The position numbers and the translations under genes were made by a program. A model generated the notes under the pieces. The model saw nothing but the letters and a program-made list of their open reading frames with translations, was not told the DNA's origin and searched no databases. 64,000 nt of DNA from Octopus sinensis (taxonomy: Eukaryota): contig NC_043004.1 of the NCBI RefSeq assembly GCF_006345805.1, positions 71,982,001-72,046,000 of the forward strand. Direction: 5' to 3'. Positions 16,406 through 63,831 of this stretch are shown one piece after another. Position 1 is the first letter of the stretch; the number at the start of each line of letters is the position of its first letter.

Positions 16406-16557
16406 TTATCATTGAACTCGTAGGTTGATGCTATATTTCCAAACCATGGTTTTGAAATGAGTTTATTAGAATTGAACCAGGATCTGAAATCTGTACTTCT
16501 TCCAGTGAAAGTTAATGAGTGAATTTCAGCATTATTTTTTCTCAATATGAGTTTCAC
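16406..16557 (-). CDS. Gene A coding exon 3 (unnamed extracellular domain)
   Basis: ttgcag|GTG...GAT AA|gtatgt; VKLILRKNNAEIHSLTFTGRSTDFRSWFNSNKLISKPWFGNIASTYEFND; paralogous to 63683-63831 with the same phases (0/2). Confidence 0.85.
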
Positions 16558-16807
16558 CTGCAAATACAAAATTGAATGAAATCAAGAAGAAATCTGACAG
16601 GACTGAGGTAAAAGTATGAGAGAGAGAGAGAGACTGAGAGGGAGAGGGAGTGTGAAAGAAAGGAAAAGGATACTGAAAATTGTGAGAGAGAAATGCCAAG
16701 AGGAAATTATGGTGTGGGGTTAACAGAAGTCATAAAGGGCTGACAACTATGTAATGTAATACTTTTTATTGCATGATGATCATTTTGAAATTTTCAAAAG
16801 GTATCAC

Positions 16808-16899
16808 CTTATCAATAGACAAAATATCCCAATAACTGTACACAGGACTCCTTTTAAACGCTGTTCTATTCATCTCAAATACTTTCTGCCAGCTCGTAC
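16808..16899 (-). CDS. Gene A coding exon 2
   Basis: atacag|GT...AAG|gtgata, 92 bp; TSWQKVFEMNRTAFKRSPVYSYWDILSIDK; same length and strongly similar to 53820-53911. Confidence 0.9.
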
Positions 16900-17483
16900 C
16901 TGTATGAGTAATGAATGATATTGTTTTAGATTTAAAAGAACAGACGAGTTTTCAATTAATCTTTTAACGAAAATATTCTAGTATGTTTTACAATGGACTC
17001 AAAATAATTGTGTTGATTTAGAAATTATTCGATATAAATTCTTCCCAGGTTTCGTCTTAATGTTTTTGGTTTGGGGTTTCGATTTCATTAGTACAAGAAT
17101 TCGATAATCAAAAGAAATACTACAAAATTATTGTTTCTGTTGTTATTCAGCACCGAGTCAACTCTGAATGACATGTCCCATGGGAAAAGTTGCCGTAGCC
17201 ATGACCGTTTCGTCTATCTGTCATATATGCCTTATCTAGGACATTATCCAATGCGTATCATTCTTCTGAAGATGATATGATGTAATTTTAGAGAGGTTTG
17301 CCTGGTATTTCTAGCAGATTTTACAACCTTGGAAATATTGTCTTTTAGTTTCATTAAAGTAAATCGGAAAAGTATTTTACTGAAAGAGTTGTTATAATGT
17401 CGTCAGTTAAAACGGAAAAATTGAACAACACTTATTGATCCCGTCTGCTTGAAAAACAATAGTTGGTTTAGTGTTAATATATT

Positions 17484-17851
17484 TGTTATGATGTGAGATT
17501 TTCCACATTTAATATGTGTGGCTACTGTTGTGATTATAGCTGTTGTATCTACTCTTGTAGCCCCGGTATTGTATTGGTATCGGATACAGTGTATCTCTTG
17601 TATTACGGAATGGCGACACACCGCATCATCTATCGTGATATCGCCAATAGCTCTGCTAGACACAGAATTTCATCCCTCTACCTTGACTGTTACTAGAAAC
17701 TCGACTATAACCCGTAACTGACACTTAACTCTAAGAACTCGTACAACGACTCTACAACCGACTGACACACGTCTCTCTGCACTGGTTGACGTTGTCTCAC
17801 TTTGTAGTGACAGTGCCATACCACTTGTCGCATATCATTTCCACTACAACA
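17484..17851. mobile_element. Solo LTR (368 bp) in intron 1 of gene A
   Basis: Starts TGTT, ends AACA, and is flanked by a 5-bp direct repeat ATATT (17479-17483 and 17852-17856); GC is higher than the flanks. Confidence 0.7.
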
Positions 17852-18213
17852 ATATTTGATACGTATTGTTAACAACTTTAAGTAGAGATAATTTCGGTTG
17901 TGAAAAATATTAGTTTTTGAAAGATATTAATTGTTTTGGGTGGAATCCAAAATAATTATGGGCTGTTTTTTTATGAAATTATAATCTATTATGTACTTCT
18001 GTAAATTGTAACTAACCACTAAGTATATATGCAAAAGCGTAGGCCTTTTGGTGTAGAAAACTTAGAATAATCTTAGTTCTGAATTTCTGAGACGAGGAAG
18101 TTTAAATTATGTATTAGATATTACAGAACTGTATTATCAAATCGGTACGAAGACGACATGAGACACCAATGGAGGTTATAAGCCTTAACAAATTCACTCT
18201 GTCACTGTCTACA

Positions 18214-18346
18214 GGCATAGCGCAGTGGATAAGGCGTGGTTAATGCAGTGCAGTCACACAGATGTTCTGAGTTCAACCCCAGGCCAGTCACGAAGGTGAA
18301 TCACAAGACACCTGAAGGAGGCAACACTCGAAACGTAATGTAAGCA
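18214..18346 (+). mobile_element. tRNA-like Pol III head fused to a degenerate hammerhead
   Basis: A box TAGCGCAGTGG (18218-18228), B box GTTCAACCC (18271-18279), then GACAC-CTGAAG-GAG-GCAACA-CTC-GAAAC-GTA. Confidence 0.5.
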
Positions 18347-18358
18347 ATACGTTTCGAA

Positions 18359-18767
18359 GACGGCGAGCTGGCAGAAACGTTAGCACGCCAGACGAAATGC
18401 GTAGCCGTATTTCGTCTGCCCCTACGTTCTGAGTTCAAATTCCGCCGAGGTCGACTTTGCCTTTCATCCTTTCGGTGTCGATAAATTAAGTACCAGTTAC
18501 ACACTGGGGTCGACGGAATCGACTTAATACCTATGTCTGTCCTTGTTTGTCCCCTCTGTGTTTAGCCCCTTGTGGCTAATAAAGAAATAGGTATTTCGTC
18601 TGCCGTTACGTTCTGAGTTCAAATTCCACCGAGGTCAAATTTGCCTGTCATCCTTTCGGGGTGGATAAATTAAGTACCCACTGGGGTCGATCTAATCGAC
18701 TTAACCCCTTTTTCTGTCCTTGTTTGTCCCCTTTCTGTGTAGCCTCTTGTGGGCAATAATGAAATAA
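18359..18767 (+). mobile_element. tRNA-derived SINE with a duplicated body
   Basis: GGCGAGCTGGCAGAAACGTTAGC head, two GCCTTTCATCCTTTCGG..GTCGATAAATTAAGTACC bodies, and a 17-bp TSD GAAACGTAATGTAAGCA (18330-18346 / 18768-18784). Confidence 0.85.
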
Positions 18768-19324
18768 GAAACGTAATGTAAGCATTAGCAACAAAGACGA
18801 AGACACCAGTTCGGCTAAGACATAAAACTAAAATAGCTTAGAGAATAAGGCAGAGAAGATATACACAAATGAAAGAGCAGAGTTAGTAACACTAGTTATA
18901 CATTTGGTCATAGCTATTGAACTTGGATCATACTGAGGGAAACTAACGTTTGATATAATGTAAAAGAACGGTTTTGTAATGAAAACGCATCTACAGAAAG
19001 GCTGTTTTAAATTACTTTTTTTTTGTATTCCGTGATTGAATAAATGTTTGAAATGAGAGCTTTATCCTTATTGGTTGCAATACTTGTGGTCACTCGTTAT
19101 GGAAACAGTGCAAACTAGTGTGTTGTATTAATGATGTTTGTATATAAAATATAATGGTATAATAACGAAAAGGTGATGAAAAAATAAAACCATTCTGCGT
19201 GCTATGAGAGACACATCTATTTTATACTAAAAACTATGGTGAACTAAGCAGCACAGAGGTACATATTGTGGTAAAAAGTTAATACAAAAAGCTCAAAAAT
19301 AAATGTAAAACTTTATTTACTCAC

Positions 19325-61699: not shown

Positions 61700-61705
<6 letters not shown>

Positions 61706-62815
61706 TAGTTTTATTTTTATAGCGTGCTTTCACTTCACTACCGAGCACAGCTCTGTGTGCCTTGGGTATGTGCTGTGATTTGTTGTGATGCTCTGATGGT
61801 TATTGTATGGAAAGTGTTCTGCGTAGGATGTGTGCAGTGCCTAGTAGTGCAATTTTCTGTATGTTATATGTGTTTGTAAGTCCTGGTGTTTTTGTTATGT
61901 ATTTGTCTGAATATTTTTTTATCATGCCTAATGCACCTACTATGATAGGAATTGTTTCTGTTTTCAGATTCCACATTCTAGTTACCTCTATTTCCAGGTC
62001 TTTGTATTTTGAGAGTTTCTCCATTTCTTTTAGAGACACGTTGTCATCAGCCGGTATTGATACATCAATTAGAAAGCATTTTTTTCTTCATGATCTCTGA
62101 CAACTATATCTGGTCTGTTGGCCTTAATTTCTCTATCTGTGTGTATCCCAGAGTATGGGATATCCCAGAGTATGGTTGCTTTCTCGTTTTCTGTGACCTT
62201 TTCTGGTGTGTGCCTATACCATCTTTTTTCTGTTGTTATTCCATAATGTTGGCATAGCTTCCAATGTATGTAGGTTCCAACTCTGTCATGTCTGTGAATA
62301 TATTCCTTCTTAGCCAAGACTGGGCAGCTAGAGATAATATGATTTATTGTTTCTTGTCCATCTCCATATATTCTGCAGTTACTTGTAATATTTCTTTTCA
62401 TTACATGTTTTTGGTAATTTCTGGTGGGGAGGCTTTGGTCTTGTGCTGCAATTAAAAATCCCTCTGTTTCTGCTTTGAGTCCTGAGCTTCTCAACCATTG
62501 CTGGGATTTTTCTTTGTCTATTTCTTTTGCGTTTAGTTTAGTCCAGTATTTACCATGAAGGGGCTTTTCTTGCCATCGTTTTATCATGGTTCGTTGCTGT
62601 TCTATTTTTAGTTTGGATTTCATTTGTTTTATAGCTTTTGTTGTTTCTTCATCTTATTCTTCTTCTTCATGTTTATTAGGTGGTATGATTTCTTGTTTGT
62701 ATTTGTCAGCTTCCTTAAATACTGAGAACAGTTTTTTGTTTTGCTCGTGTTTTGCCGCTATCTGGATCAGTTTTCCTTCCTTCTGAAGTAGATATTTTTG
62801 CAGTCCTATGGTGGT
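61700..62815 (-). mobile_element. R4/Dong-like RLE LINE 3' fragment
   Basis: WQEKPLHGKY, SGLKAETEGFLIAAQDQSL, INHIISSCPVL..KEYIHRHD, ANRPDIVV, IPIIVGALG; (TAA)n on both sides (61637-61700, 62826-62899). Confidence 0.9.
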
Positions 62816-62830
62816 TATTATATAATAATA

Positions 62831-62899
<69 letters not shown>

Positions 62900-62900
<1 letters not shown>

Positions 62901-63310
62901 GAGTGAGAGGGCAGTGCATGCCATCAAAGTGACATTGGGGTAAAATATACGAAGCCTAGTATACCCATCTTAACGACCCGTCTGATAATGATAAATCAGG
63001 TACATGCGTTACAACAATACGTTCTCGACATCGTGATCTCATGTTAAAATAACCAGCACATGACCTTACAGGAGGAGCCAGCTCCAGTTACGATTTCTTT
63101 TAGGTCGAATAGCCCCCTGAGTGAGGTTTGTTTAAGGATGTTGAACAAAACACCCATGTCTCCAGAGGTGAATTATCCAATCCCCAAAGAATTCCTCTCA
63201 ATACATGGCTATGATGCTTCCCCACTATTTCTGCTCGTGATTAGAGATGCAAATATTTTTACTCGTCACAAATGCAACGGAACGTTTGCAAAGACTCTGA
63301 AATCATAAAT
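62900..63310 (-). mobile_element. Non-coding interspersed repeat (homologue of 22140-22690)
   Basis: GAGTGAGAGGGCAGTGCATGCCATCAAAGTGAC and AAACACCCATGTCTCCAGAGGTGAATTAT match the 22-kb element in reverse. Confidence 0.7.
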
Positions 63311-63365
63311 CAAATTCTAAGTAGTCCGATTTTCTGTTTTATAAGTCGCTTATAACTCCTAAACT

Positions 63366-63450
<85 letters not shown>

Positions 63451-63682
63451 TACATTTTGCCCTCTAAATTTTCGCACCTTCACTTTCTTCCTTTTTCAAC
63501 TTCTCTATTCATTTTTCTCTTTTATTCTAAGGCTCTTACTTCCCCATTTTCTCTCTCCCTCTCTTACTCACCCACCTTATCTATCCCTATATATCGTCCT
63601 TCTCTTCTTTCTCTTTCTGCTATTCATTCCTCTCTCATTCTCTTAGATTCCTAATTGACCCGTATCAACTTTCCATTTACAG

Positions 63683-63831
63683 GTGGAATTTCAGTTGAGT
63701 CGACCTAATAAAACTTACTCGCTAATTTTCAATGGAACGGGGACAAATTCCACATCGTGGTTCCGGGAAGATAAACTCATTTCCCATCCTTTGGCAAGCG
63801 GTACTCCAATGAAATTTACATTCAATAATAA
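63683..63831 (+). CDS. Gene B coding exon 3
   Basis: tttacag|GTG...AAT AA|gtatat; VEFQLSRPNKTYSLIFNGTGTNSTSWFREDKLISHPLASGTPMKFTFNN; the gene presumably continues beyond the window. Confidence 0.85.

Follow-up and report, generated by a model that had tools for sequence, protein, structure and literature searches.

We examined a 64,000-nucleotide stretch of the Octopus sinensis genome (the window), which comparison of the flanking loci places at approximately 71,982,001-72,046,000 of chromosome record CM016866.1 and which consists of AT-rich, repeat-rich eukaryotic DNA. It carries two genes, A on the minus strand and B on the plus strand, which on the evidence of sequence comparison are real, divergently transcribed paralogues with the same exon architecture. 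We put at about 0.7 the probability of our overall reading, namely that these are two members of a tandem family expanded in octopods, each encoding a predicted extracellular protein of ~245 amino acids (aa) in six coding exons. The spliced product of gene A is 100% identical to RefSeq LOC118764577 (O. sinensis, 'uncharacterized protein'), and gene B is 100% identical to the corresponding part of RefSeq LOC118764386 (O. sinensis). The genes, noted in a preliminary description of the locus, are therefore already in databases as 'uncharacterized', and both have RefSeq models, which are flawed. Coordinates below are window positions; L001 denotes the locus record that holds gene B and the right flank, and L003 the locus record to the left of the window.

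Structure of genes A and B

The shared exon scheme is 13/330/92/149-152/107-116/47-56 nt, realized as 13/330/92/152/107/53 nt in gene A (248 aa) and 13/330/92/149/113/47 nt in gene B (246 aa). The preliminary description had given exon sizes of 330, 92 and 152/149 nt with phases 1, 0 and 2, and we recovered these at the same coordinates with canonical AG/GT sites. Its shared motifs (SKCLS, CGYFSYCNG.C, WQKVFE, RSP.Y.YWDIL and SWF...KLIS.P) were likewise all found in the frames and places given. The span that it assigned to the whole genes (16406-63831) holds the middle three coding exons only, and both gene ends were wrong. The proposed start, 'cag|GA-ATG', is instead an internal acceptor, and a 13-nt coding exon (MNxK+G) lies upstream of it in both genes. 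Nor are the exons fully hidden from a search for open reading frames (ORFs), as had been claimed, since a simple six-frame listing includes ORFs of 118-128 aa for the 330-nt exons. The coding exons are as follows.

26321..26333, minus: gene A first exon, coding part (ATG AAT GTT AAA G, then gtaagt; MNVK+G); the 5' untranslated region extends upstream
19325..19654, minus: gene A 330-nt exon (putative signal peptide and PAN/apple domain); 100% tblastn match to RefSeq LOC118764577; 'exon 1' of the preliminary description
16808..16899, minus: gene A 92-nt exon (TSWQKVFE...YWDILSIDK), where the C-terminal domain begins; motifs, splice sites and tblastn
16406..16557, minus: gene A 152-nt exon (VKLILRK...SWFNSNKLISKPW...); core of the match to the canonical bilaterian domain described below
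11608..11714, minus: gene A 107-nt exon (EENFFISP...RYNEVVN); tblastn and splice sites; absent from the preliminary description
5306..5358, minus: gene A terminal coding exon (DNHKIDVDAMEIYILLK, then stop); conserved; absent from the preliminary description and unused by the RefSeq model
38971..38983, plus: gene B first exon, coding part (ATG AAT CTT AAA G, then gtaagt; MNLK+G)
44873..45202, plus: gene B 330-nt exon, copy 1, with an intact ORF and intact splice sites
50414..50743, plus: gene B 330-nt exon, copy 2; the copy chosen by the RefSeq model
53820..53911, plus: gene B 92-nt exon (KHWQKVFE...YWDILPIKK); motifs and splice sites
63683..63831, plus: gene B 149-nt exon (VEFQLSR...NGTGTNSTSWFREDKLISHP...); motifs and splice sites
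L001 26465-26577 (window-equivalent 65139-65251), plus: gene B exon 5, ~1.3 kb past the window end
L001 30927-30973 (window-equivalent 69601-69647), plus: gene B terminal exon (NVPLHCLVISVLFN, then stop), ~5.6 kb past the window end

Aligned over 190 aa, the partial proteins of genes A and B share 39% identity, and a tblastn search with the gene A protein recovered the gene B exons at E = 5e-16, 7e-8 and 4e-4, a likeness that, at the level of sequence, is well beyond chance and bears out the divergent paralogue pair of the preliminary description. The exon scheme is not confined to the window: the Octopus bimaculoides gene LOC106876622 threads exactly onto its own genome as 13/330/92/152/110/56 nt. 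That the architecture is kept across species and paralogues is strong, if indirect, evidence that the exons are joined correctly. The N terminus MNVKG of gene A agrees with the RefSeq LOC118764577 protein, MNLKG is present in most family paralogues, and the gene A C terminus encoded at 5306-5358 matches the C termini of two O. bimaculoides relatives.

Both RefSeq models depart from this structure. LOC118764577 joins exon 5 to an exon at L003 52278-52322, ~16 kb left of window position 1, skipping window 5358-5306; the model appears mis-joined, with the conserved last exon left out. We rejected its C terminus (EFGIQMKYENVVVVI) as that of gene A, as it lies outside the window, 16 kb to the left in a paralogue on the opposite strand. 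LOC118764386 (402 aa) begins with a repeat-derived N terminus taken from an ORF at window 48552-48899, lacks a signal peptide, continues through the gene B exons and ends with exons 3-6 of the neighbouring gene C, and so appears from its sequence to be a chimera that fuses two genes (B and C). With the coordinates listed above, both models can be put right.

The 330-nt exon of gene B is doubled because of a tandem duplication of 5.5 kb on the plus strand (40429..50980; units 40429-45439 and 45924-50980, 94.5% identical), each unit of which contains one exon copy. The two copies are 2 nt apart, and both changes are nonsynonymous.

Inverted duplication of the 5' regions, promoter included

The true head-to-head gap between genes A and B extends from 26.3 to 39.0 kb of the window, and homologous 5' regions lie at its two ends.

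26271..26585, minus: gene A promoter and 5' exon region; inverted homologue of 38748-39033, 68% over 317 bp
38748..39033, plus: gene B promoter and 5' exon region; inverted homologue of the gene A region

The first exons, ATGAAT(G/C)TTAAAG|gtaagtgaattaat, align in inverted orientation together with ~400 bp of upstream sequence, and a MAFFT alignment of the two 5' regions has a mean column identity of 75% over the ~500 bp compared. As the first exons and the ~400 bp upstream are homologous in this orientation, the pair is the product of an inverted duplication that took the promoter with it.

Members of a tandem cluster

Genes A and B do not stand alone; they are part of a cluster of at least four paralogues (Z, A, B and C) in the window and its flanking loci, and the neighbour LOC118764387 lies on the same chromosome record. 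Gene C, to the right of gene B at L001 47785-70349, is intact and encodes 249 aa in exons of 13/330/92/149/116/50 nt. Paralogue Z, at L003 46405-53429 (minus strand of that record), is ~10-17 kb left of the window and convergent with gene A. Three of its exons were seen; it is A-like, with 60% identity in the 330-nt exon, and has SVCW in place of SKCL.

Profile searches found at least 11 close genes on several contigs of O. sinensis. In O. bimaculoides, LOC106876621-25 form a tandem run and further members exist; O. vulgaris has members as well. Gene A groups with LOC106876621/22 (69% and 58% identity), whereas gene B has more in common with the main subfamily (LOC118764387 and LOC118768100/01, 50-63% identity) than with gene A (39%). 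Because synonymous divergence (dS) between genes A and B is saturated (~1.3) and the two fall in different subclades, their separation is old. Taken together, the sequence comparisons indicate that the family is expanded in tandem in octopods and that its genes grew in number by inverted and tandem duplication, promoter included.

Repeats within and between the genes

Several repeats accompany the two genes. The first intron of gene A contains retroelement fragments at window 20332-21759 (plus strand) with an RVT_1 match, and the next ORF there has, by eye, a GIY-YIG-like motif (CVYYIPCSCGRLYKGET), which suggests a Penelope-like element. Within gene B, the intron between the 92-nt and 149-nt exons holds a near-perfect palindrome of 3.18 kb (55565-58743), with a 99.2% match to its own reverse complement and with non-LTR retroelement ORFs (zf-RVT match). 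Either a true inverted duplication or an error of assembly could account for the palindrome.

In the intergenic region, a 183-bp satellite is present at 32417-34126 (9.4 copies, 97% matches) and again at 35949-37874. It is ~84% similar to copies resembling short interspersed elements in a gene A intron (18346-18766), and an array that resembles it lies downstream at L001 ~38.8-39.5 kb. Between the two promoters, a 150-aa ORF at 30608-31060 (minus strand) has weak C2H2-type zinc-finger matches and is probably transposon-derived. Long six-frame ORFs at 24061-24507, 6810-8235, 29621-29941 and 40683-41070 are microsatellite or low-complexity artefacts rather than genes, made up of GTT/GCT runs and CATA/TATG-type units.

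A PAN/apple domain

The N-terminal domain (domain 1) has the cysteine pattern E-C-ALR-C-KMNDM-C-GYFSY-C-NGP-C, with an invariant core of C-x3-C-x5-C-x-[YF]F-x-Y-C-x3-C. Cysteines 50, 67, 71, 77, 83, 87 and 103 are invariant in five aligned sequences, and the same core recurs in a 16-member alignment; a core of this kind should be able to form the PAN disulfides. Profile searches of the Protein Data Bank (PDB) sequences returned solely apple/PAN domains (MIC4, MIC5, factor XI and prekallikrein), with E values down to 0.001. For structure comparison we used an AlphaFold2 (AF2) model of a RefSeq A-type relative, for which the predicted local distance difference test (pLDDT) is 79 overall and 86-90 in domain 1. 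Foldseek matched the domain 1 model with a probability of 1.00 to the Eimeria PAN module 1hky (TM score 0.55, target-normalized; 2.9 Å), the plasminogen PAN domain 4dur/4duu (2.4-2.8 Å) and the HGF N domain (NK1, 1bht/1gmo), with fits of 2.4-3.5 Å root-mean-square deviation (rmsd) over 72-86 columns.

Scores against the Pfam models PAN_1 (PF00024) and PAN_4 (PF14295), judged by their curated gathering thresholds, were low. Gene A reached 12.8 bits for PAN_4 (cut-off 27) and 9.1 for PAN_1 (21.4), and gene B 14.9 and 14.2 bits against the same cut-offs. Weak, sub-threshold PAN matches were found in 12 of the 16 family members, the best PAN_4 score being 18.9 bits (cut-off 27), the best PAN_1 score 14.2 bits (cut-off 21.4) and the best E value among the 16 being 7.6e-4. 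On its modelled fold and its cysteine pattern, domain 1 is a PAN/apple domain, without support at the Pfam cut-offs. The assignment of the preliminary description thus stands on the structural match, the cysteine core and the PDB matches.

A derivative of an unnamed bilaterian domain

The C-terminal domain (domain 2) had been left nameless, and we found no Pfam match for it in the octopus members, nor for 25 domains of the related canonical module described here. PDB-sequence profile searches with three profiles returned no relative of domain 2 or of the canonical module. A search of 1.84 billion representative proteins with the family profile returned 129 proteins, and those outside the octopus family match profile positions ~129-192. 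They come from amphioxus, a crinoid, a starfish, a hemichordate and many bivalves (E = 1.4e-35 to 2.4e-7), and other octopod proteins, Argonauta among them, also match. In the reciprocal direction, a hidden Markov model (HMM) of the canonical domain gives E values of 1.9e-15 for gene A and 2.9e-13 for gene B.

The canonical module is ~187 aa long, is often repeated 2-4 times and is found alongside EGF, sushi, TSP1, C-type lectin, FN3, D8C and ZP modules; proteins of 240-290 aa from Dreissena and from other octopus genes pair it with one PAN domain. It has the motif F-x-G-x-G-[ST]-x(3,4)-W-F, invariant W, F, W and R residues, two conserved cysteines (C119 and C137) and the block 'YGGC..D.GW...C.W'. 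The octopus family aligns to HMM positions ~12/35-105 of 187 only (the first two-thirds), lacks counterparts of C119 and C137 and is ~50 aa shorter. This partial alignment and the loss of the cysteines point to a truncated, derived variant. An AF2 model of the isolated octopus domain 2 has a pLDDT of 92 and is all-beta with one short helix. As judged from these alignments, domain 2 is a shortened, cysteine-free derivative (~135 aa) of the ~187-aa extracellular domain and is not specific to octopuses.

Fibrinogen-related domains (FReDs) recur at the top of the Foldseek results for the domain 2 model, with probabilities of up to 0.96; the matches are weak (best E 0.036, TM 0.39-0.47, rmsd 7-9 Å). 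Pfam PF00147 has no match in the octopus family or the canonical domains, and hhalign of the canonical profile gave a probability of 0.2% against ficolin-2 and 0.45% against a ficolin plus fibrinogen-gamma profile, a FReD profile of low diversity that is shallow because the protein search returned mammalian ficolins only. With hhalign probabilities below 1%, no PF00147 match and weak structural similarity, we rejected FReD membership and did not file domain 2 there.

Predicted secretion features and evolutionary rates

Close to the N terminus, both proteins have a hydrophobic h-region (QVLTIIFLVIL in gene A, LTVGFTLLIFG in gene B) followed by a small-residue motif (TGA or TGRA); the N-terminal helix has low confidence in the AF2 model of the A-type relative. 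Neither protein has a further hydrophobic anchor beyond this segment. There are two N-glycosylation sequons in gene A and five in gene B, including the family-typical NGTGTNSTSW. These features suggest that both proteins are secreted.

Pairwise Nei-Gojobori estimates, which are noisy and crude, gave the following nonsynonymous (dN) and synonymous rates and their ratio (omega); the comparison of gene A with the LOC106876622 gene may be paralogous rather than orthologous.

Gene A and the LOC106876622 gene, whole coding sequence: dN 0.30, dS 0.32, omega 0.95
Gene A and the LOC106876622 gene, 77 PAN codons: dN 0.27, dS 0.17, omega 1.6
Gene A and the LOC106876622 gene, C-terminal domain: dN 0.37, dS 0.49, omega 0.76
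Genes B and C: dN 0.33, dS 0.54, omega 0.61

With the cysteines and core motifs fixed and a mean omega near 1, many other sites must be evolving at the neutral rate or faster. Such high ratios fit diversification at the sequence level. A diversifying family had been proposed in the preliminary description; the fast protein evolution (dN/dS 0.6-0.95) and the tandem expansion speak for it. Genes A and B themselves are not a young pair that separated fast.

Interpretation and alternatives

In the reading that we favour, each gene encodes a protein with a cleavable signal peptide, a disulfide-rich PAN/apple module and an all-beta C-terminal module of ~135 aa. The products would be secreted, N-glycosylated, soluble binding proteins in which the PAN module, possibly together with the beta module, might recognize a carbohydrate or protein ligand in a lectin-like manner. 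Birth-and-death duplication and fast sequence change could then generate a repertoire. The most likely setting, which we put forward tentatively, would be a mucosal or immune surface where the proteins act in extracellular recognition.

Several points weigh against this reading. The PAN scores remain below the Pfam gathering thresholds, and hydrophobicity and the family pattern were the only criteria for calling the signal peptide. A dN/dS near 1 is also expected under relaxed constraint, and the estimates themselves are crude and lean on a comparison that may be between paralogues. No ligand, lectin motif or catalytic site was identifiable in the proteins of genes A and B, the protein collection that we searched contained no transcript assemblies of either gene, and a literature search that took in octopus proteome papers found no mention of these genes or of the domain.

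The same data can be read in other ways. The proteins might be components or ligands of the egg coat, the spermatophore or an epithelial apical matrix, with their evolution driven by sexual or gamete-recognition conflict. The domain company of the canonical module lends this some weight, as it occurs four times before ZP-N/ZP-C in an amphioxus protein and beside a D8C (uromodulin-like) domain in a starfish protein; proteins that combine PAN and ZP are apical-matrix components in nematodes, and a high dN/dS is typical of reproductive proteins. The octopus proteins, however, have no ZP or polymerization module, and the main text of a paper on the octopus seminal and spermathecal proteome makes no mention of apple/PAN proteins, so that we consider this account rather unlikely. 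The rates would also suit decaying or neutral duplicates, that is, young pseudogenes or dispensable copies under relaxed constraint. A dN/dS of 0.95 between gene A and the LOC106876622 gene, the two nonsynonymous differences between the 330-nt exon copies, a locus riddled with retroelements and duplications, and the mis-joined RefSeq models could all be taken in that sense. What makes decay improbable is the integrity of the genes: in A, B and C all six exons are open and bounded by canonical GT-AG sites, the same exon sizes and phases recur in paralogues whose dS is saturated and in two species, all PAN cysteines and the WQKVFE, YWD and SWF motifs are kept, and the AF2 models are confident.

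Recruitment of a lineage-specific secreted family to the posterior salivary gland, as saliva or venom, or to sucker or olfactory epithelia in chemosensation, appeals to general features only (small, secreted, disulfide-rich, tandem, fast-evolving and lineage-restricted). We regard it as very improbable, given that the proteins bear no likeness to a known cephalopod toxin or to an odorant or chemotactile component, that the literature search produced no match, and that the canonical relatives belong to large proteins of the matrix type.

Cephalopod genomes contain many lineage-restricted, tandem-expanded secreted families, among which the octopus PAN family is now well defined. The parent domain of ~187 aa is widespread in invertebrates, has no Pfam model or solved structure and was without a match in the literature search. 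It is possible, if doubtful, that the C-terminal module is the first noticed derivative of an undescribed bilaterian-wide domain, from which octopods dropped the disulfide half, to which they fused a PAN module and which they expanded into a fast-diversifying, lineage-specific repertoire of soluble recognition proteins analogous to the mollusc FREPs. If this is a true recognition repertoire, whether immune, mucosal or reproductive, it would represent diversified binding proteins in molluscs that are neither FREPs nor immunoglobulin-like.

Comparison with known systems

FReD proteins are secreted, tandemly expanded and fast-evolving lectins in molluscs. Ficolins, angiopoietin-like proteins, tachylectin 5A and the mollusc FREPs are recurrent top fold matches of domain 2, and its 'W..VF....G....W' stretch lines up with the FReD 'GGWTVFQRR.DGS.DF.R.W'. 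Domain 2 is, however, far shorter than a FReD, with no P-subdomain, Ca2+ site or disulfides, and the likeness may be a functional analogy at most.

The sole trace of a named family, at the level of sequence matches, is Pfam DUF7922, which an amphioxus protein with four canonical repeats matches at 32.1 bits against a cut-off of 25 over 'VKV.L....F.G....WF'. This is a summed, partial match that no single amphioxus repeat passes on its own, and none of the 25 canonical domains and none of the 16 octopus family members match DUF7922, even at E <= 10.

The closest likeness of domain 2 is to the ~187-aa domain itself, examples of which are Dreissena polymorpha KAH3750350.1 ('Apple domain-containing protein'), Branchiostoma XP_078667427.1, Ptychodera flava XP_070568449.1 and Acanthaster XP_022098360.1. 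It shares with the octopus family the core 'Y.YW..L.I.KV.F.L....F.G.GT..TSWF...L..S.W', whereas the octopus proteins lack its two invariant cysteines and the 'YGGC..D.GW...C.W' block. The architecture of a PAN module plus this domain in a secreted protein of ~250-290 aa also occurs in a bivalve and in other octopus genes.

Domain 1 has the fold of the PAN/apple proteins (plasminogen, HGF N, the factor XI and prekallikrein apples, MIC4, MIC5 and SML-2) and the same C-x3-C-x5-C plus aromatic core, to which the octopus family adds an extra cysteine pair (C-NGx-C). Each octopus protein has one PAN module where others have 2-4 tandem apples, and this module is fused to a different C-terminal domain, without a protease or kringle partner. 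MIC5 and SML-2, which are microneme lectins of apicomplexans, are likewise small secreted proteins built around a PAN module.

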